Source: Oikopleura dioica
Lineage: Eukaryota; Animalia; Chordata
Assembly (NCBI GenBank): GCA_907165135.1
Contig: OU015567.1
Coordinates: 11,904,001 to 11,968,000, forward strand
Direction: 5' to 3'
DNA: 64,000 bases
How positions within the stretch are numbered: the first letter of the stretch is position 1; every line of letters begins with the position of its first letter. This document shows positions 1,143 through 64,000 of this stretch, piece by piece. The translations under genes were made by a program, and so were the position numbers. The notes beneath the pieces were generated by a model. The model saw only the letters and a list, made by a program, of their open reading frames with translations, had not been told where the DNA came from and did no database searches.

Positions 1143-4100
1143 CTATTTACACTCTCCAAGCCCGCTTGTTGGAGCTTCTATCAGGTTAAGGCGTAGATCT
1201 AACTCCCGTTTGTTCAGGTACACGTCCGAAATGCATCCATGGAAGCCTTCTATTGAGTCACCGAATTCGTTTTTCATTCCACCAATAAACGCAAAACCGT
1301 CCGCGGCGAAATCGACAGTAGTTAGTGCAAGGTCGGAGTCGGCATAAGAACCATTGTCGATGAGAAGATTGAGGGTTCGGAAACCGACGTCCTTTTCTTT
1401 TTTGTAGACGACCTAAATAACAGTAATAACAGAAACAATAAGATTCTGTCTCGAAGAAAAGTATTTGTAAATTTACGATATTTTCATCAATGAAAAACAT
1501 TAATCAATTTTAGAACAATCAGAACAGGGCTCCGAATCGCGGGGGCGCGCGCCGTGAGCGCCAGAGGTTGAACTCAAGCGCGAACGAGAATCTCGGGAGC
1601 AAGCGGCGCCCTCCCGAGCAAGTTGGGGAGCAAAATTTCAAAATGAAAGCGCCGGCGGGTCCGAGTTTGCGCCTATTTTCTCGGTTTATAATCGATCAGC
1701 TTGTGAAAATTGAATGAAAGAATCTTCCCCTGAAGAATATCTTTCAAAATTATGATGAATTATCTTCATTATGAATTTTGACATGAGCTATTTTCAAAAA
1801 TTCGTTTTTGCATATATACTTTATATACACTCTTCTTTCTATTGTCGTTTTAAGTTTTTCTCTATCGTTCTTAATTCAGTCGCTATCGACGAAAGAAAAG
1901 TTTAACTTCAAATGGATTCAGCACTTTCAATTTTGAAAATATGAAATTATATAAAATTGCTTCCACCGGAAAGCCCAAAAAATTCTGATCAAAAGTTATG
2001 TAATGAGGTGTTATGAAAATCATCAAAGTAGTAATAAGAATCTATAATCCATACTATGGAGTTTAAGTAGTCTAAGAGTAGTCTAAGACTATGGTCCATA
2101 GTTATTAGCGCATACTTTGCGGGAATCAAGCGCAAACAAGCCAAAATATTAACGCGAATGACCGCTGTGGAACCGATCCACTCCGGAAAAGCTCACCTTC
2201 CACTCGGCAGGTGATTGTTATCATAACCCCATTAGGTAACTTTAGTACAGAATTTTTTCTTCTTTTCGGTGAATCAAATTTCGTTGAGAACAAATAAAGT
2301 TTGCAGGAGTTTATGCCTTTTGAAGTTGAATTTCTCTTTTTTACTCTAACTCAAGAATTAATTGTGATAATGAAAATCTGAAAGTGGGAGGTGAAGGCTG
2401 AGAGAATGTAGATAAGTTTAACAGAAAAAATTTCGAAAAAGCTTTTCTGAAAAATCAATGACGACCGCGTGAAGAACGTGAAGACCGCGTTACTCGCGCG
2501 GGTACTCCTATACATCGGCGCGGCGCTGCTAGCTCGATCCGCGCTCCGCCAGAACCTAGGCGCGATCGAGCCCTTGGTTCGCGAACGAGAGGCTCGGGCG
2601 CGCCCGGAACTCGCCGTGAGCGCTGAAAAATGTTGCTCCCGAATTTTTTCGGGAGGGCGCACCTCGCGCCCAAGAGTTTTGTTCGCGCGCGCGGTTTGAC
2701 TTTGCCGCTCCCGGCGCACGCCCCCGCGATTTAGAGCCCTGAATCAGAATGCTTTATTTAGTTACCTCAATATCGGTCCATTCATCTCTGTCGATTCTAT
2801 AAAGTGACTCCAATTCAAGAAGAACATCGTTTCCGTCTTTTATGTCTTCGATCTCAAGTCGCACAACCAAGTAACCGGATCGGACATGGATTTTCAACGA
2901 GCTTGTTCCCAATTCATTGCTGCTGTAGTAAATTGTTTCCCTTTCTGTGTTCTCGGGAACTTTGATTTTCATCTGCACCCTAACTTCATCCTGAAAGAAG
3001 ACGATTATGCAGATTCTGAGAGGAGTGGCATATAGTTTTACGACTGAAATTATCTTACCATCATCATAAGTGGCTCAGTGACGAAATTGAAATACTTGGC
3101 TGCATTGTTAAACTTGACGGGCCCAACTTTACGGCTGAAAGGAATTGCTGGCTCATATGCAGGCGCGACCATTCTTCAAATTACTAATTAAAATCATTCT
3201 CAAAAATAGTCAATTACCTTCTCAAATCGGCGTCCTGCCACAGGGCCAACTGTTCATCGTTGAGTTTCAAGGACCGGAAGACGCCGTGGAAGCCGACCAG
3301 CTGCTGGAAATAGCCGGACAAATGAGAGAATGTTGAAGGATGGATTTGACCGATGACAAGACGACCCTCGATTCTGTTTTTTCGGCGATTGTAGGTTTTT
3401 GTTTGACTTTAATTGATAAATAAGTAAGGAAGCGTTATTCGTTGCGATGTGTGCTAAGATATGAAGATTTCTTTTCGAAACTTTCGAAACAATTAAGGGG
3501 GTAGAAACAGCTTTCTCGATTTTGGACTGCAGCTACATAAAAGAAAGTAAAAGATTTATTTATGTTCACGGAATTTCCTCATAAATGCTCCTAGAAAAAG
3601 GGTTGAGCTTCACAAAAATATGAATGAAATTTGTTTAACCATCAGAGGACTCGAGATAGACGTGTTTAAAAATTTGCGAAAATCAAGAATTTCGGAGAGA
3701 TAAGCTGCTTCTGAGCCCGCTTACTCAAAAATTTGATGACTAAAACGAATTTCGAGAAAGATGTTCCTAGATCTAAGATGTTTCTATCTAAACCCAAAGA
3801 GAAAATTTTAAAATGAAAGATTTTCTTGTCTGTACCGCCGGTCAAAAATCGCCTTTTTCGGAGAAAAGCTGTTTCTACCCCCTTAACTTCAAATTTCAAC
3901 AATTAGTTAAGCAGTTATGGTTTTATCGTTCCTGTGATAGCTTCTACATTTATCCTGGCACATTTTCATCTCCACTTTCCCAGGTTTGAATTCAAGCCGG
4001 ACTTTCGTATTGACGCCATCTTCAAGCGGAAATTGGTCCTCAAGAATTTGCTAAAATATCATTTTCGCTATTGTTTAAAATTTTGGCGCACTACCATTCC

Positions 4101-7100
4101 GGCGGTGTCGGTGCCGTGGAGACTCAGATCGAGCCGCAGACGACGCTCGTCGACAGAGAGGACAACAGTTTTGGCGATGTGCAGCAGACCGTAACTGGCC
4201 TTTCCCGGTGTGGATTCGAACTCAATCTCGATTGAGCTGATCCGCTTTGGCTCTTCCGAATCGAACATGAGAATGCTGAAGAGATTTTTATTCAAGAACG
4301 GAATATTAGCAAAACCTTGATCCGTTCATCTTGACTCCTTGCGATCGATGAGGTCCCTTTGAAGCTTCACAAAATCTAAGACCGTCCCATTCGACACAAG
4401 AATCGTCTTTTTCACACTCATTCAAACTATTTTGACATGGTGATCTTCCATCGCATTTCTCAGTTCCATAACTGTAAACCGATTTGACCGGGTAGTGAGC
4501 GTTTTCGTAAACTCCCGATTTTACCGCCGAGCCGCTTATCATCTGGAAGCAGCCGGTAAGACCCTTGTTGATTCCGAGCCTTGAGAGGATATCCAGCTCT
4601 TCGTCTTTTGGAATTCCACCAATGTAGATATTGGACAAGTCCAGTTCTCGCGAATCCTTCTTTCCGGCAGCGATGTATTCCTGAAGATTTCCCGTAAGCG
4701 AAAAATAATTTCTCATAAGCCTAGGCTTTATCTTGAACATGAGTACACAAAGCACTGACTTTCAAGTTTTTCTTTTCAGAATCAATTTAGTCAGCTTTTC
4801 AAGCTTATCCGAGCATTGCGTACTTTTATCGAAACATGAAACTTAAGATGCCAGATGTTTACTTTTAATTCTTGGCCTGTTTCCGATTTGAAATAAACAT
4901 TTCATTACAAACATGGCAATTTAATATCATCTCAAGACAACGTGTTAGTTTAGTACTACTTACGGGGCGGGGAACATGGTCCAAGATCAAAGTGATCCCA
5001 CCGCGGTTGAATTTGAGCTCGACAGTGTGCCACACATTATCGTTGACCGCTTTCTTGTACCGATAAGGTTCGTTTTCTGCGAATGAAAGTTCCAGTTTCG
5101 AATCTTTTATCTTCAACGCCAAGGTCTTATCCAGCGCGAACGGGTTGCCCGCCCAAAAAATGACACCATTAGGATCGCGCGTTCGGAACTTGAATTTGAT
5201 CTCGAACTCGTAAGTTGTATCACAGCGCTCGAAAGAGTATCGCTCAAAGGACTCTCCGCCAAACCACTGACCATGGAGAATGTTGAATTGGGTGATTGAA
5301 CTTCGACCTGAAAAAGAAGTTGAGAATTGAGTGAAGATTTATTCGAAGATACCGAGGTTTTCTTGAAGGTATGTGTTGATCTTTGATTCGAGGTAGGGTT
5401 TATCTGGTGAAATTTCAATGTGAACTGTGGCGGATTTTTCCTCGACTGAATCAATACTGGCAGATTTCTAAAGAGAAAGATTAACATTAAAAACTTTAGT
5501 TTAGCCAACCAATTTGATATCCCTGAGTTCGGCGGCGAAAACTTCACTCAGGTCTTTTTCAATTCTTGCTTTGTCATTCCAGTCCATCTTTTTGGCTAAA
5601 GTTAGAATCACATCGTATCCCATGCTGTCAAAATCGATGGAGCTATCCTGTGGCAGTTTCGCTTCCGATAATGAAATTGAATTATTTTCGCATTCTTCGT
5701 CGTCGCAGGTCAAAATTTGTGGATCTATGTATCCCCCGGAACCTTCTTCGTCTGCATTTTCCGTCGGCTCTGGCGCTGGTGGCAAAATTGGCGGCATAAT
5801 TATCTCCTCCATGATTTCCGATTCCTCCGATGACTCATCCTCACTGTCAATCTCTATCTGTGGATATCCGCTGAAAAGACATTGCTTGAAGTATTTGACA
5901 GCTTCCGGCTGGTTTTCTGGCTTTTTATTGCAATGTAGCCGGCGCATGCCACACAGACTTCCATAAATGCGATGATCGTCTCCGCAGACAGCTCCGGATT
6001 CGACTTCCGCCAAAGTGCAGCCTTGGCACTCGTCTGGTTGCACGTCGATTTTTATGTCGCATTTTTGTCCAATGAAGCCTGCTTTGCAAAAACACTGTCC
6101 ATTTTCATCACAAAGTGCGCCTCTACTTCCCTGCTGAGAGCAAGAACATTGAACACAGAGGCCATTTAATTGATAGTAGTTCAGCTCGCAAATATCACAG
6201 TGTCTTCCTTTGTAGCCTGGTTTACAAAGACAACCTTCTTCGTGATCACAAGGTCCTTCAGGATTGTAAGCGCCAGGATGGTTACAATTGCAGTTGCTCT
6301 TGGTAATGACCAGTTCTCGCTGATTTTTACAGTTTCCATCTCTGTAGTATTTACACAAGTTGTCAAAAACAACGCCTTCTGCAACGACTTGAGATCCGAA
6401 ATCCGGACAATGCCAGTTACAGCGGCAGTAAATTTGATTTGAGAATTCTTCATCATCGTCGAATCTGTCTGAAACATCGACTCCGCCAAATTTACACACT
6501 TCTCCGCCTCCAGAACCTTCTACCTCTACGCCGCAATGTTCCAGCGGTACTTCGTAGAGCTCCTGGTTGAAGTGACAGGCCTGGCTTCTGAGCTCGCAGC
6601 GCGAGTCGTAAAGAATTCCGTCTGAACCACAGACGGCAGAATCGCCAAATTGGTGCTCACATTCGGGGCAGCGGCACTCTACTCCATCAACGGTTCGCTC
6701 GACACCAGCAGTGTAGATTGGACAATTGCTCTCGTCATTATCGTCTGAATTTTTTAGATTAAGGTGTCATCGAAAATCAAAAACCACATCGCTTGAATTT
6801 TAGTTTATAAATTGCAAACAAAAACAGATGATAAAAAAAATTTAAAGCTCTCTGATATTCCTTCCCAAAATATCTAAAGAGGTCACAGGAAATTTGTTTA
6901 ATTGCATTTAAGACATCCTTGAAGCTTTTGAAAACGGCGCTAATTGCGCATGCAATTCCGAAACGCGACGCTTTTAAGCCGATCCAAGATGATTATTGTC
7001 TACTCTGTGCAAGTCCGTTGATTTCATGGTCAGTTGACTTTTGTCCCCGAGATCCGCACAAAATGTACTCGAAAATTAGAATTGGCATTTCAGCTGCCTT

Positions 7101-59971: not shown

Positions 59972-62900
59972 TTAACCCTTGGTCTTCTTCTTCTTGTTTT
60001 GCTTGCCGGTTTCTGAGGGTAGGACGCAAACGTCAGCCTTGTGTTCCCACTTGCAGACATAGCCTGGAGCGCGATTTGGAGTTGGCTGACAGGAGCATGA
60101 GGCCTTTTGGCTGTTGGTCTAGAAACGAAGGTAGAACTCAAAGTTTGATCTACTGCTTTACCTTTTTGATGGATCCATCTTTTGAGATTCCGAGAACAAA
60201 TCCGGCATCACATTGAAGAGTACATTCGACCTTGGTCTTGGGAATAGCGACTCCAGTTGGGCAGCTCTTGAACTCCTTACCCCATCGAGCTTGAAGGATG
60301 GAGCCAGCCTGAGCGAGGGAAATTTCGCCATTGGAAAATTGTCGGGCACGCGCCATTTGTTTCTTTTCAGCCTTGCTTGTTGCAATGTACTGGCCATTCT
60401 TGACTGGTCGAAGTGGTGGACACATCATTCCTAAAACGCATGAATACTTGTTTCTGAGAAAATAACTTACTGTTGCAATGAGTCTTGATCTTGCCCTTCC
60501 ATGTGCACATTTTGGCGATCTGTCCGTTGACATCTTTACGCATTCGGCAGCCACATTCCAAATCGAAATCTGGGCTGACTTGCATAGCTCGGACGGCACT
60601 AGGTCCACAGATAGCGAAACAGCGAGTACCTTCGCTGACTCCATCACCTTGGCAGTTCCAGCCGACCTTGCCTGACTCGGTAAGTTTCTCTTTGCCTTGA
60701 TCATAGATTGGCGATTCTGGTAAGCAAGCTTGGACATTCTTTCCCTTGACTGGTGGACAGGTTCCATATCCCCAGCCGCAGTCAGGGTGATCCTTCTCAG
60801 AGTCGTCACCACCCTTCTTTTTCTTGTTCTTTTTGTCCTTCTTTTTCTTGTCCTTTTTAGCTTTCTTATCCTTCTTCTTTTTGTTCTTTTTGCCCTTTTC
60901 TCCTCGATCAGCAGACTCATCAAACTCGGATCGGTCTTCTTCAGGAGCAGCTTCAGTTGCGGCTTCAGTGGGCGCTTCAGTAGGAGCCTCAGTTGGAGCT
61001 TGAGTGGCTTCAACTTCAGCGACAGCTTCGGTAAGATCATCGGTTTCAGCTTTCCAGACGACTTCTTTAGGAGAAGTAATGACAACACTTCCGTCGTTTT
61101 CGAAGTTCTCTGGGACGCAAACACTGATTGGTTTGATCCAAGTCTTTGAGGATCGGTCGCACACGGCGTCCTTGGCACCATCAAGTGGTTCAAAGCCTGC
61201 AAAATTGTTAGATTTCATCCAAAAAGATTATGAAAGACATACCTGAGTCACACTTAAGCTTGCATTTTCTGACACACTCCTTTCCAAGAGTCTCGTCGAT
61301 ACAAGCAACACTCCAGTTGCAGATGTATTGACCATTCTTGACATTAGGTGTCTGGCAATCAGCTTGTCTCTCTGGAGCCTGAAGTTTTACGCACTGCGTT
61401 GGTGGACTGGTGACGACTCCATCCTTGCAAGCCCATTTTGCTTTGCCTTCTGGAACATGACCAGCCTTGCACTGAAGTCGGCACGTGATCTTGCCATCTT
61501 TCTCCTCGCAGTTCTTATACGCACCGTTCTTGACTTTACCAGGTTTTCGCTGGCACTGGTCGACGATTTCTTTCTTTGGTGGTTGTGGTGGTGGCTCAGG
61601 AACACTTAAATTGACATTATTAAAGATTTTTTTCATTCAATTTTACCATCGGTGGACGCTCTTCGAGTAAGGCTTGATCCATTCAGTATCTGTTTGTCGA
61701 CAGCCGATCTTGACAGAGTTCGCCTGTTTAGGAACAAATCCACTGTTACATTTCATCTGGCAGACGAGGTAAGTGGTCGACGCAAATCGAGCAAGTTGGT
61801 TACCCCACTGGGCATCGGTAGATCGTCGCTTTCTGCTTTCTTCATGATCAGGCACAATATCCCAAAGACCTCGCTCAGCAACTTGAGACATCGCCTTATC
61901 AAATTGTTAAAAAAGTAATTTTTCAAAGATTTCATACTTGTTTGTTGTAGTTGTTGAACTCTTCCTCCTCTTCCTCAGAAATCGAGACGAATTCTTCACC
62001 ACGCATAGCTGCTTCGTTAGTGGTAAGTTTACATTTCCATTTGCCGTTGTCAAGAGCTTGTGGAGCAACACAGCTGACAGTTTCGCGGCCACCATAAGTA
62101 GCCATGCAAGTTCCTGGGACGACTTCCCAAATTCCGCTGTCCATATTACAGATAGCCATTGTGGAACCCTTTTCAAAAGTTATTTCAGAGAAGAGATGCG
62201 TTTCATTTCTACCTGCATAACGTAACCATTGTTACAGGTGGCAGTACATCGCCTGAAACCGACAGAGTTGTAGTCCTCGTTCTTTTGGTTCTTTTTCTTC
62301 TTTCCGCGCTCTTCTTCAACAGATCGTCGCTCAACAGTCCTGAAAATAAATTTATTTTGATCAAGTCATTCTTATCTTACTTGAGAGCTCGCTCGAATTC
62401 TCCCTCTCGTCGTTCTCGGTTCTTTGGGTGATTGAAGCAAGCAATTCCATATTTCTCTGGATCACAAGGAGCTTCTTTGCACTTCATGTTCTTTTGAACT
62501 TGGAGTGGATTCTTTCGGTTGTAATAAACACCATCTCTGCAGATGATGATAAGCTCTCCGTGCCATGGACGGAAGTTTTCTGCGCACTTGATCATGCAAA
62601 GCACTTGGCCGCTTGAAGATTCTCGGCAATCCATAACACCACCCTTGACTTCATTGATAGCTGGAGAAAGCTCACAAGCGCCGGTAGCGCCGACAAGCGT
62701 TTTTGGATCAGGAGTTGGAACAGTAAACTTAGGATTAGCAGTTGTCTTGACTGCCTCAACTGGTGCCTTTTCTTCTTCGCTGTCGTCACTTTCGGACTTC
62801 ATGTAGTTAGTGTCGGCGGCGATGTAATCTTCGCATTCCACATTACCGTTGTCAAGAGAAGGAACATTCTGGCAAGTAGCGACTTCTGGGACACAGTTGG

Positions 62901-64000
62901 TTGCTGGAATCTGCCAGATACCGTTGTTCTGATCACATCGTGCTTCCCATCGTCCGTTAGCGGGTCTAAATATTTTTACCACAAAAAAAAACAAAGAAAA
63001 GTGTTACCTGTAACCAGGGTTGCATCGAAGATTACATCTGAGGAGGCCATAATGGACATTACCGTAGCCAGCGTATTGATCTTCATCGCAGATGTAGTAA
63101 CCATAGTTGACCTGAGGTCGGTAACAGTATTTGTTTGCTGGGGGCTGTTTGTTGCAGAATGCAGCGGGTGGCTGAAGCCATTGCCCAGTAGGAACTCGGC
63201 AGACAGCAATGTACGAGCCGGAGAATGCATATCCATTATCGCAGTTTGCGAGGCAGACGTAGTTCTGTGGCTTGCCGTAGTTGTAAGAGCGGCTCATTTG
63301 CTTCTTGGAAAGCTTAGTATGTTTGTTTTCGAGCTGATCGCCAATGACTTGAACTTCATCGCTGTAATAATCAGCACCACTGATTTCTCGTCGTCTTCGG
63401 CCAATCTTTTTAGCTCCCTTTCGAGGTGGTGCTGGATCAGTCTTGATAGAATCCCAGTCCTCAGTTCGTGTTGTTGAAGATGGGTAAGGGGCATCATAAT
63501 CTTGGAGATAGCACTTCCACTGTCCATATGGAATGGGGGCAGGCTCTTTGCAATATTCTGGGTATGATGGAAGAGTCTTCACCTTGCAGCCGATCGGTTG
63601 AGGAGTAAAAGCACCAGAAGCATAGTTGCACTGGTAAGTTGTTCGATAAGGATCTCGTGGGACGAATCCGTCATAGCAATGAAGCGTGCATGAGGTTGTG
63701 TAAGCAGTCCCTTGTTTCTTGTAACCGCAACTGAGGTAACCACCGTTCACATACTTCTGATTACACATGGGGTTGTAGTGAGATTTAGAGCAGTGAGTTG
63801 GTGGACTGAGCCACTTTCCGGATGTCTCATCGCACTTAGCAACCCATCGTCCATTTTGCGGGGTGTAGCCAGGTGAGCAGTTCAAGTCACAAACTAAATG
63901 GCTAGAACTGTATCGACCCATAACAGCATTTGGTTCGGACCATGTGCTTCCAAAGTCCCCTTGATCATCGTGAGCGTCACTTACAAGCTCAGTTGTCTCT
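59972..64000 (-). CDS. Large, probably secreted protein with about 11 six-Cys Sushi/CCP-like modules, acidic and Lys-rich linkers; 5' end outside the window
   Basis: Repeated C-x(8-14,NG)-C-[loop]-C-x3-C-x2-G[YF]...C...W...C modules across ORFs 63004-63921, 62377-62994, 61932-62159, 61643-61891, 61208-61636, 60367-61218, 60150-60430; last exon ends KQNKKKKTKG* at 59972; AATAAA at ~59822-59827. The frame stays open at 64000. Confidence 0.85.

Follow-up and report, generated by a model that had tools for sequence, protein, structure and literature searches.

A stretch of 64,000 nucleotides from the genome of the larvacean Oikopleura dioica (G000:C5:11904001-11968000; referred to as a whole as the window) carries the 3' third of a gene for a giant secreted protein. 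The protein is an array of about 27 complement control protein (CCP, or Sushi) modules, in which an extra Cys pair, C2 and C3, lies at the base of a hypervariable loop. We consider it probable, on balance, that this is a secreted array of selectin-type CCPs in which each long stapled loop would be nicked once, some modules are nested inside others, and the product is used in an extracellular matrix.

The host gene has 10 exons on the minus strand and extends from window position 59972 to ~70550, past the window end, so that its remaining two thirds were reached in the DNA beyond. According to the exon model it encodes 3,387 residues, 180 of which are Cys, has a TAA stop at 59972-59974 and yields a protein of ~373 kDa. 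Counting and local alignment used this spliced protein model; searches took single exons, and units that cross introns were represented in searches and folding by a database ortholog, P0002. The genome searched (G000) comprises 64.3 Mb in 19 contigs. Word searches for relatives returned P0001 (from TARA, 41% identity), the P0002 cluster (O. dioica lineages, 85-89%), P0003 (30%) and P0020-22, all of which are metagenome-derived or unnamed.

Selectin-type modules and the motifs in their loops

The modules follow the pattern C-x7-16-C-[4-200]-C-x3-C-x8-20-C-x8-20-C, with 18 strictly regular copies in the whole protein. C1, C4, C5 and C6 form the framework, with C-x-x-G-[YF] after the second framework Cys and G-x-W ahead of the last; most modules that act as hosts (see below) have the Trp, and their guests often do not. 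From eight compact copies, in which Cys and Gly are invariant, we made an alignment (A1) and a profile. The best solved-structure sequence for this profile was E-selectin 4c16 (E 5.9e-6), followed by factor H, FHR and C4BP, and the hidden Markov model alignment placed all six Cys in register with those of CCP1 and CCP2 of E-selectin. These two E-selectin modules were thus the best match in sequence, and they were also among the best in structure. The AlphaFold 2 (AF2) models ma5575778bf3a and mc6c10116d188 align with more than 50 solved CCPs (Z 5-6.6; root-mean-square deviation [rmsd] 1.9-3 Å over 55-59 residues). Foldseek alone gave marginal E-values, the best being 1.3e-3, because these are two-domain models with long loops, and VIA-align was used instead.

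In the CCPs of selectins the Cys pair as C1-C5, C2-C3 and C4-C6. The C1-C5 and C4-C6 bonds are canonical for the fold, and the additional C2-C3 bond staples the base of a hypervariable loop. The E-, P- and L-selectins, and many SVEP1-like modules, share with the protein described here the spacing C1-x12-C2-x8-12-C3-x3-C4-x13-C5-x12-C6, and in the AF2 models the strand with C2 and the strand with C3 are predicted to be matched to each other. What we have here are therefore Sushi/CCP modules of this known selectin-type variant and not a new kind of module. A preliminary description of the window had proposed six-Cys Sushi modules with an extra Cys pair around a loop of about 8 to about 190 residues. 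The modules and the pair are borne out by the E-selectin profile match and the structural alignments, and the measured C2-C3 gaps in the window (8 to 85 residues, and ~181 for the nested unit) agree with the proposed span; the pair itself is that of the known selectin variant.

If nesting is allowed, the tally from the Cys maps is 14 split CCPs that bear a basic motif, 10 compact CCPs without one and ~3 degenerate modules at the C terminus, and all 180 Cys are then assigned. The loops of the split modules are disordered inserts of 30 to more than 400 residues. The modules of the window that are not part of a nested unit are as follows.

63586-63765, minus strand: compact six-Cys CCP, aa 2238-2297 (Cys pattern, profile)
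63154-63552, minus strand: split CCP with an 85-residue C2-C3 loop, aa 2309-2441 (Cys pattern)
62893-63126, minus strand: compact CCP with a 17-residue loop, aa 2451-2514, spanning intron 2 (Cys pattern)
61604-62072, minus strand: split CCP with a 75-residue loop, aa 2760-2887, spanning introns 5 and 6 (Cys pattern)
61391-61555, minus strand: compact CCP, aa 2904-2958 (Cys pattern, alignment A1)
61111-61357, minus strand: eight-Cys CCP variant with a double-stapled short loop, aa 2970-3034, spanning intron 7 (Cys map)
59975-60780, minus strand: C-terminal Cys-rich region with 18 Cys in degenerate CCP-like modules (architecture kept in P0020; no Pfam match)

In the eight-Cys module the stapled loop has 8 residues here and ~55 in P0020, an ortholog of 41% identity; loop length at stapled positions is free to expand and contract. 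Past the window end (L005), two adjacent modules at aa 558-700 and ~702-950 have seven Cys each, both here and in the orthologs, which hints at an inter-module disulfide.

The convertase consensus R-x-[KR]-R occurs 15 times in the protein, compared with 0.85 +/- 0.86 times in 2000 composition-preserving shuffles, none of which exceeded 5. Fourteen of the 15 motifs lie in inter-Cys gaps of at least 30 residues, one per split-module loop; the fifteenth, RCRR, includes a framework Cys and probably arose by chance. Counted by gap, 20 inter-Cys gaps are at least 26 residues long, and 14 of these contain exactly one motif. The six long gaps without a motif comprise the first arm of each nested unit, the linker with the EAPT repeat and poly-Lys block, and a C-terminal loop. 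Gly is found at P5 in 9 of the 14 sites (p ~6e-6), and the 20 residues that follow the motif are 32% Asp plus Glu (E 19%, D 13%).

In a four-way alignment the motifs are kept at or beside the same columns in the orthologs of 41% and 30% identity, in which the loops themselves are 41% and 30% identical and the module cores 59% and 48%. The acidic character of the arm on the C-terminal side of the motif is likewise conserved across P0001, P0003 and this protein. All 14 motifs lie in loops predicted to be disordered, with a predicted local distance difference test score (pLDDT) below 50 in the AF2 models of unit c and of the unit d ortholog (units are defined in the next section). The genome encodes candidate enzymes, since the convertase P-domain (PF01483) scores above its cut-off at six or more loci. 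Judged by these sequence comparisons, the convertase-type motifs are under constraint.

The basic and charged elements of the window are listed here.

63388-63399, minus strand: RRRR with Gly at P5, conserved in three orthologs (motif scan, ortholog alignment)
62407-62418, minus strand: RERR in the host loop of unit d, read as RERR, RAKR or RNRR in orthologs (motif scan, ortholog alignment)
61823-61834, minus strand: RKRR, conserved (motif scan, ortholog alignment)
62324-62335, minus strand: VERR, a dibasic motif not conserved in close orthologs (ortholog alignment)
60940-61011, minus strand: EAPT-type acidic Pro/Thr repeat
60814-60897, minus strand: poly-Lys block, 21 K in 30 residues, present in orthologs of 85-87% identity and absent from the 41% ortholog

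Four processing-like basic sites had been pointed out beforehand. Three of them (RRRR, RERR and RKRR) fit R-x-[KR]-R and are conserved; the fourth, VERR, reads TV-RSV in orthologs of 85-87% identity and is probably not a real site. The EAPT repeat and poly-Lys block noted at the same time are both present.

A Gly also precedes the basic cluster in 5 of 10 cases in P0001 and 7 of 13 in P0003, an arrangement that resembles peptide-amidation signals; the Gly before RRRR in the window is encoded at 63400-63402. Copper monooxygenase domains of the PHM/DBH type are present at three or more loci of the genome.

One module inside another

A unit of 14 Cys has the following order: an N-half with C-x11-12-C, an arm, a full compact CCP, four residues, C-x8-C, an arm with the basic motif, and a C-half with C-x3-C..C..C. 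It occurs three times in this protein (aa 1355-1615, 2026-2229 and 2521-2748) and seven times in the orthologs, and a fourth, more degenerate copy is found at ~aa 700-950. The guest consists of the compact CCP and a mini-hairpin, C-D-P-x-x-Y-G-x-x-C, placed upstream of the basic motif in the loop of the host. The parts of units c and d that lie in the window are these.

63790-63891, minus strand: unit c host CCP, C-half (C3-C6), aa 2196-2229; its N-half, guest and RKRR lie past the window end
62833-62874, minus strand: unit d host CCP, N-half (C1-x12-C2), the "outer" module of the preliminary description
62677-62832, minus strand: unit d host loop, first arm, acidic, without a basic site and predicted to be disordered
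62479-62676, minus strand: unit d guest, a compact CCP in the host loop, aa 2587-2652
62437-62466, minus strand: unit d C-D-P-x-x-Y-G-x-x-C mini-hairpin, which travels with the guest, aa 2657-2666
62106-62248, minus strand: unit d host CCP, C-half (C3-C6), aa 2716-2748, spanning intron 4

The same Cys could also be read as a simple tandem array, in which the hairpin is a short N-half for the C3-C6 half that follows and the upstream C1-x12-C2 closes on itself. The six-Cys pattern does accept hairpin plus C-half as a regular x8 module at aa 1498, 2132 and 2657, and the Cys counts balance whether the units are read as tandem or nested. The orthologs argue otherwise. In P0003 the host of unit c is uninterrupted: the same N-half is joined straight to the same C-half by a loop that contains GRKRR, with neither guest nor hairpin, and a guest is found instead in the neighboring module, which is plain in the protein described here. 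Furthermore, in two units of P0003 the guests are 85% identical and the hairpin regions 69%, as against 29% for the N-halves and 27% for the C-halves. Therefore, one cassette was copied into another host loop, and the hairpin was duplicated with the guest and not with the C-half to which a tandem array would assign it. A tandem array would also require that the long loops without a motif be exactly those that follow the "orphan" N-halves. We regard the tandem alternative as improbable.

Structure prediction points in the same direction. AF2 models were made for unit c of the window genome (alignment A2; mean pLDDT 59.5) and for the ortholog of unit d (P0002:824-1054, alignment A3; mean pLDDT 65.9). 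In both, a strand of 8-9 residues in the N-half (pLDDT 71-84) is matched to the strand that carries C3, the C-half is predicted at 75-86, and both arms fall below 50. Single solved CCPs, whose matched chain ranges cover ~60 residues (e.g., E-selectin 158-219), align with the unit c model over 55-59 residues that are drawn from model residues 3-211 (rmsd 1.9-2.6 Å, Z 5.7-6.0) and with the unit d ortholog model over 54-60 residues drawn from model residues 4-231 (rmsd 2.0-3.0 Å, Z 6.0-6.6). One CCP could not align over these ranges unless N-half and C-half belonged to a single domain around the insert. We rate this line of evidence as good but not conclusive.

Ortholog comparison, cassette duplication and the two structure predictions together support a discontinuous host CCP, with one CCP nested in another, that recurs three or four times. 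The nesting proposed in the preliminary description, with a complete module between a CQNV..C half and a CTATC.. half, is thereby upheld, including by the AlphaFold check suggested there, in which a single CCP superposes on N-half plus C-half in both models; the arrangement is found three to four times, and not once as then described. An initial reading of our own had joined the CTATC.. half to the preceding C-D-P-E-K-Y-G-I-A-C as one module and left CQNV..C as an orphan, and it was rejected in view of the ortholog alignment, the cassette identity and the two models.

A further pair of half-modules lies past the window end. A C-x12-C-x4-C segment (aa 1188-1206; L005:4359-4415, minus strand) and a C-x2-C-x3-C..C..C segment (aa 1640-1670; L005:2967-3059, minus strand) are 433 residues apart and share the eight-Cys signature of the contiguous modules at aa 213-378 and 2970-3034. 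The stretch between aa 1206 and 1640 takes in an RKRR arm and all of unit b, an arrangement kept in P0001, P0003 and P0026. The two segments may be the halves of a host around the motif arm and unit b, which would make a three-level nest.

Gene model, secretion and relatives

The frame that is open at window position 63999 runs upstream as a single open frame of 2,501 codons in a six-frame translation. This giant exon of 7.4 kb is exon 2, and the start ATG lies ~6.5 kb past the window end in exon 1, which has 37 nt and encodes MKQLLTVFAAVYG before a GT donor and a 74-nt intron. All nine introns of the model, which was built from coordinates, are GT-AG and 40-74 nt long. The exons of the window are as follows.

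63008-64000, minus strand: 3' end of giant exon 2, which continues to ~70439, outside the window
62381-62965, minus strand: exon 3 (junctions gap-free against ortholog proteins; intron absent from L011)
62213-62339, minus strand: exon 4 (exon model, ortholog proteins, L011)
61938-62168, minus strand: exon 5 (exon model, ortholog proteins, L011)
61647-61894, minus strand: exon 6, in which the C6 Cys codon of its module is made across the splice junction (model, orthologs, L011)
61243-61604, minus strand: exon 7 (exon model, ortholog proteins, L011)
60471-61196, minus strand: exon 8 (exon model, ortholog proteins, L011)
60162-60430, minus strand: exon 9 (exon model, ortholog proteins, L011)
59972-60118, minus strand: exon 10, with the TAA stop at 59972-59974 and a Lys-rich C-terminal tail (model, ortholog proteins)

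The nine junctions are matched without gaps by the independently predicted proteins P0002, P0014 and P0008 (85-87% identity). P0008 is CBY40984.1 ("unnamed protein product, partial [Oikopleura dioica]"), the closest named relative of the gene, and begins with the same signal peptide. In addition, the Logan contig SRR28369050_136800 (L011) encodes 1,942 residues in one unbroken frame. It is 75% identical to the window in nucleotides and lacks stretches of 38-46 nt within a few bases of introns 2-8; therefore, it behaves as a spliced transcript of a related lineage. Near position 430 of this contig (L011:1-435) the frame breaks, so that a 141-residue open reading frame (ORF) precedes the one of 1,942 residues; the giant exon is repetitive, and the break probably reflects an error of assembly or sequencing there. 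Two ORFs in alternative frames, of 350 residues (window 60150-61202, minus strand) and 418 residues (L002 8722-9978, minus strand), overlap the true coding frame. They are by-products of biased, repeat-rich coding sequence and not genes, the 350-residue ORF being a frame-shifted reading of the poly-Lys/EAPT block.

The preliminary description had called for a search for a signal peptide at the 5' end. Exon 1 provides it: MKQLLTVFAAVYG is kept in CBY40984.1 of O. dioica and in the TARA ortholog contig, where the small exon recurs as MKYLLAFFTAVFG in the gene for the 41%-identical ortholog, its donor at the same position. A scan of the 3,387-residue model found no segment resembling a transmembrane helix. 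By these sequence features the protein is secreted, with a predicted signal peptide of 13 residues and no membrane anchor.

The gene is single-copy and larvacean-restricted. When a profile of the nested unit was compared with 1.84 billion representatives, full-length matches were confined to fragments of its own family (including P0003, P0021, P0023, P0025 and P0026), all of which have long loops with R-[KR]-[KR]-R. Matches to CCP-repeat proteins of the ordinary kind covered single halves of the profile only, and such motifs are absent from them; the other six-Cys CCP genes of this genome have short loops without basic motifs. The family, too, appears to be restricted to larvaceans, since it was seen only in larvacean-like sequences.

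Six-Cys CCPs are also encoded elsewhere in the genome. At G000:C2:4751001-4761000 (L009), a giant exon at 1669-6888 on the minus strand has 1,740 codons, 108 Cys and compact six-Cys CCPs without long loops or motifs; it belongs to a separate selectin/SVEP1-like CCP protein. At G000:C4:7140501-7145500 (L010), an 868-codon frame at 1996-4599 on the plus strand has one six-Cys CCP followed by Cys-rich regions that, judged by eye, look like von Willebrand factor D and TIL domains, as in mucin-like or von Willebrand factor-like proteins.

Proposed processing, alternatives and a matrix role

We propose that, on its way through the secretory pathway, every split module is cut once by a proprotein convertase of the furin type. 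The preliminary description had likewise inferred a structural or house protein matured by nicking of its loops into disulfide-linked chains; what it observed is confirmed and goes further than was then seen, and that interpretation is borne out in part. If the disulfides are those of selectin CCPs, C1-C5 and C2-C3 would span the cut, and 14 cuts would give 15 chains linked head to tail via the split modules. Two flexible arms would come free at every nick, one on the N side, rich in Tyr, Gly and Pro in O. dioica, and an acidic one on the C side, and these might be available for intermolecular contacts in an extracellular matrix, plausibly that of the house. A strictly conserved convertase consensus is found once per disordered loop bracketed by disulfides, the protein is secreted, and the genome has several convertases; the most economical reading is one nick per split module, which seems likely to us. 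Since the protein is very large, secreted, rich in Cys and confined to larvaceans, it could plausibly serve in a matrix or in the house, a prediction that we put at close to, though slightly short of, an even balance. A more elaborate picture must be called speculative and is rather unlikely to hold in full: a matrix block of 15 chains joined only via disulfide-stapled split CCPs, with nests up to three deep (the host at aa 1188-1206 plus 1640-1670, then unit b, then its guest), 28 free arms for house assembly, cross-linking or rapid swelling, and a guest-plus-hairpin cassette that acts as an intragenic mobile module hopping between loops.

There are three other ways to account for the loops and for the use of the protein. 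The basic motifs might remain uncleaved, with R-[KR]-[KR]-R and the acidic arms making charge-patterned disordered loops of a single-chain protein, for example for binding of polyanions, cellulose or Ca2+ or for intramolecular latching. The strongly acidic stretch after each motif could indeed serve electrostatic pairing, and the poly-Lys block and EAPT repeat show that the protein has other blocks of charge. However, what is conserved is a precise four-residue consensus, one per loop and often with a preceding Gly, and not basicity in general; the N-side arms range from basic to acidic among loops and species; and the motif lies in loops of a secretory protein that are predicted to be disordered and accessible, in an organism with several convertase genes. 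This makes an uncleaved single chain unlikely in our view, although it deserves to be taken seriously. The Gly before the basic cluster at 9 of 14 sites and the copper monooxygenase genes would also suit a prohormone-like polyprotein whose loops are cassettes of bioactive, possibly amidated, peptides. Since each site-bearing loop has exactly one R-x-[KR]-R, cutting would release nothing, which argues against such a role. The sole candidate for a second site, VERR, is not conserved, and the loops are poorly conserved and of low complexity, unlike peptide hormones. Paired sites flanking conserved peptides were not found, and the prohormone reading, which we consider very improbable, was rejected on account of the single site per loop.

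The remaining alternative keeps both architecture and processing and places the protein in a secreted matrix other than the house, such as the pharyngeal or endostyle mucus net, the gut lining, the egg coat or the basal lamina. The Norwegian ortholog is an "unnamed protein product," no named oikosin is present in the 90% cluster or among the homologs, and the few oikosins with CCP modules have one or two each (PMC3390340). Against this, the list of oikosins comes from one proteomic survey, which may miss a heavily disulfide-bonded protein of 373 kDa, and the family has been seen in larvacean-like sequences only, a restriction that many house proteins share (PMC3390340). A matrix other than the house is thus a substantial possibility, if one that falls somewhat below even.

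Several observations weigh against the nicked, nested matrix array that we favor. In the Pfam search, window exons reached 17.5 and 14.2 bits for Sushi (PF00084), below the cut-off of 20.7, and the giant exon gave no match; ortholog P0002 scored 30.1 bits, above the cut-off. (Matches to CDC45 and AP3D1 on the Lys/Glu-rich linker are spurious and due to low complexity.) Several modules are irregular, with odd Cys counts. AF2 confidence is moderate, with alignments of nine sequences, and the reading as a split domain draws on the ranges of the alignments and the pattern of strands. The transcript-like support for the junctions comes from L011, a contig of a related lineage. The N-side arm is rich in Tyr, Gly, Ser and Pro here, in His and Gly in P0001 and in acidic residues in P0003, and the poly-Lys block is confined to O. 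dioica lineages. With arms of variable composition and a poly-Lys block that is lineage-specific, it is doubtful that these elements have a conserved role in adhesion or in binding polysaccharide, which weakens the earlier proposal that the charged blocks bind polysaccharide. Word searches and cluster listing turned up no named oikosin in the 90% cluster or among homologs, and the house-proteome paper does not mention furin or proteolytic processing (PMC3390340). A 2026 single-cell preprint mentions neither furin/convertase processing nor Sushi/CCP proteins, and a literature search on Oikopleura and proprotein convertases found nothing relevant.

Comparison with known systems shows which parts of the design are familiar. 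The selectins resemble this protein in module spacing, but their loops are ~12 residues long, without a convertase motif or inserted domain, and they are membrane receptors with lectin and EGF heads, neither of which is present here. Factor H, CR1, CSMD/SVEP1-like proteins and the six-Cys CCP gene at C2:4.75 Mb are, as here, secreted tandem arrays of 20-30 CCPs of the same fold; in the ordinary CCP-repeat proteins that we inspected, none had long stapled loops, R-x-[KR]-R in a loop or a module within a module. Proteins that stay together through disulfides after a furin nick include the insulin and Met receptors, some integrin alpha chains and the furin-sensitive disulfide loops of AB toxins, and domain V of beta2-glycoprotein I is likewise disulfide-held after plasmin clips it. 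These share with the present case a single cut in an exposed, disulfide-tied loop, after which the chains remain joined. Each of them has one such loop, whereas here there are 14 in one polypeptide, each in a small CCP and with the cuts predicted.

The oikosins, a few of which contain CCP modules (oik17a and oik23; PMC3390340), come from the same animal and are similar in being secreted behind a short signal peptide, rich in Cys and largely confined to the lineage; the searches above gave no sequence link between this protein and a named oikosin. Domain insertions are reported in ~20% of multidomain proteins (PMC13114784). In the present case host and guest have the same small disulfide-rich fold of ~60 residues, and the insertion site, unlike that of domain insertions in general, is a disulfide-stapled loop that also bears a protease motif. 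A narrow literature search found no description of a CCP within a CCP. A selectin-type CCP array, disulfide loops with convertase motifs, and domain insertion are each of a known kind, and their combination is apparently undescribed.

Few building blocks of extracellular proteins have been studied as closely as CCP/Sushi modules, which are usually seen as compact beads on a string. Here the stapled hypervariable loop accommodates insertions that run to hundreds of residues, or even an entire second CCP, and one convertase motif is held in every motif-bearing insert across larvacean lineages that share only 30% identity. For protein engineering, it points to a site in a disulfide-rich domain of very small size where insertions are naturally permitted. 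Should the cuts prove real, the product would be a multiply nicked, disulfide-chained protein of ~370 kDa, a design undescribed for matrix proteins. The protein is also a concrete, testable candidate for the means by which larvaceans mature an extracellular structure that they deploy rapidly.

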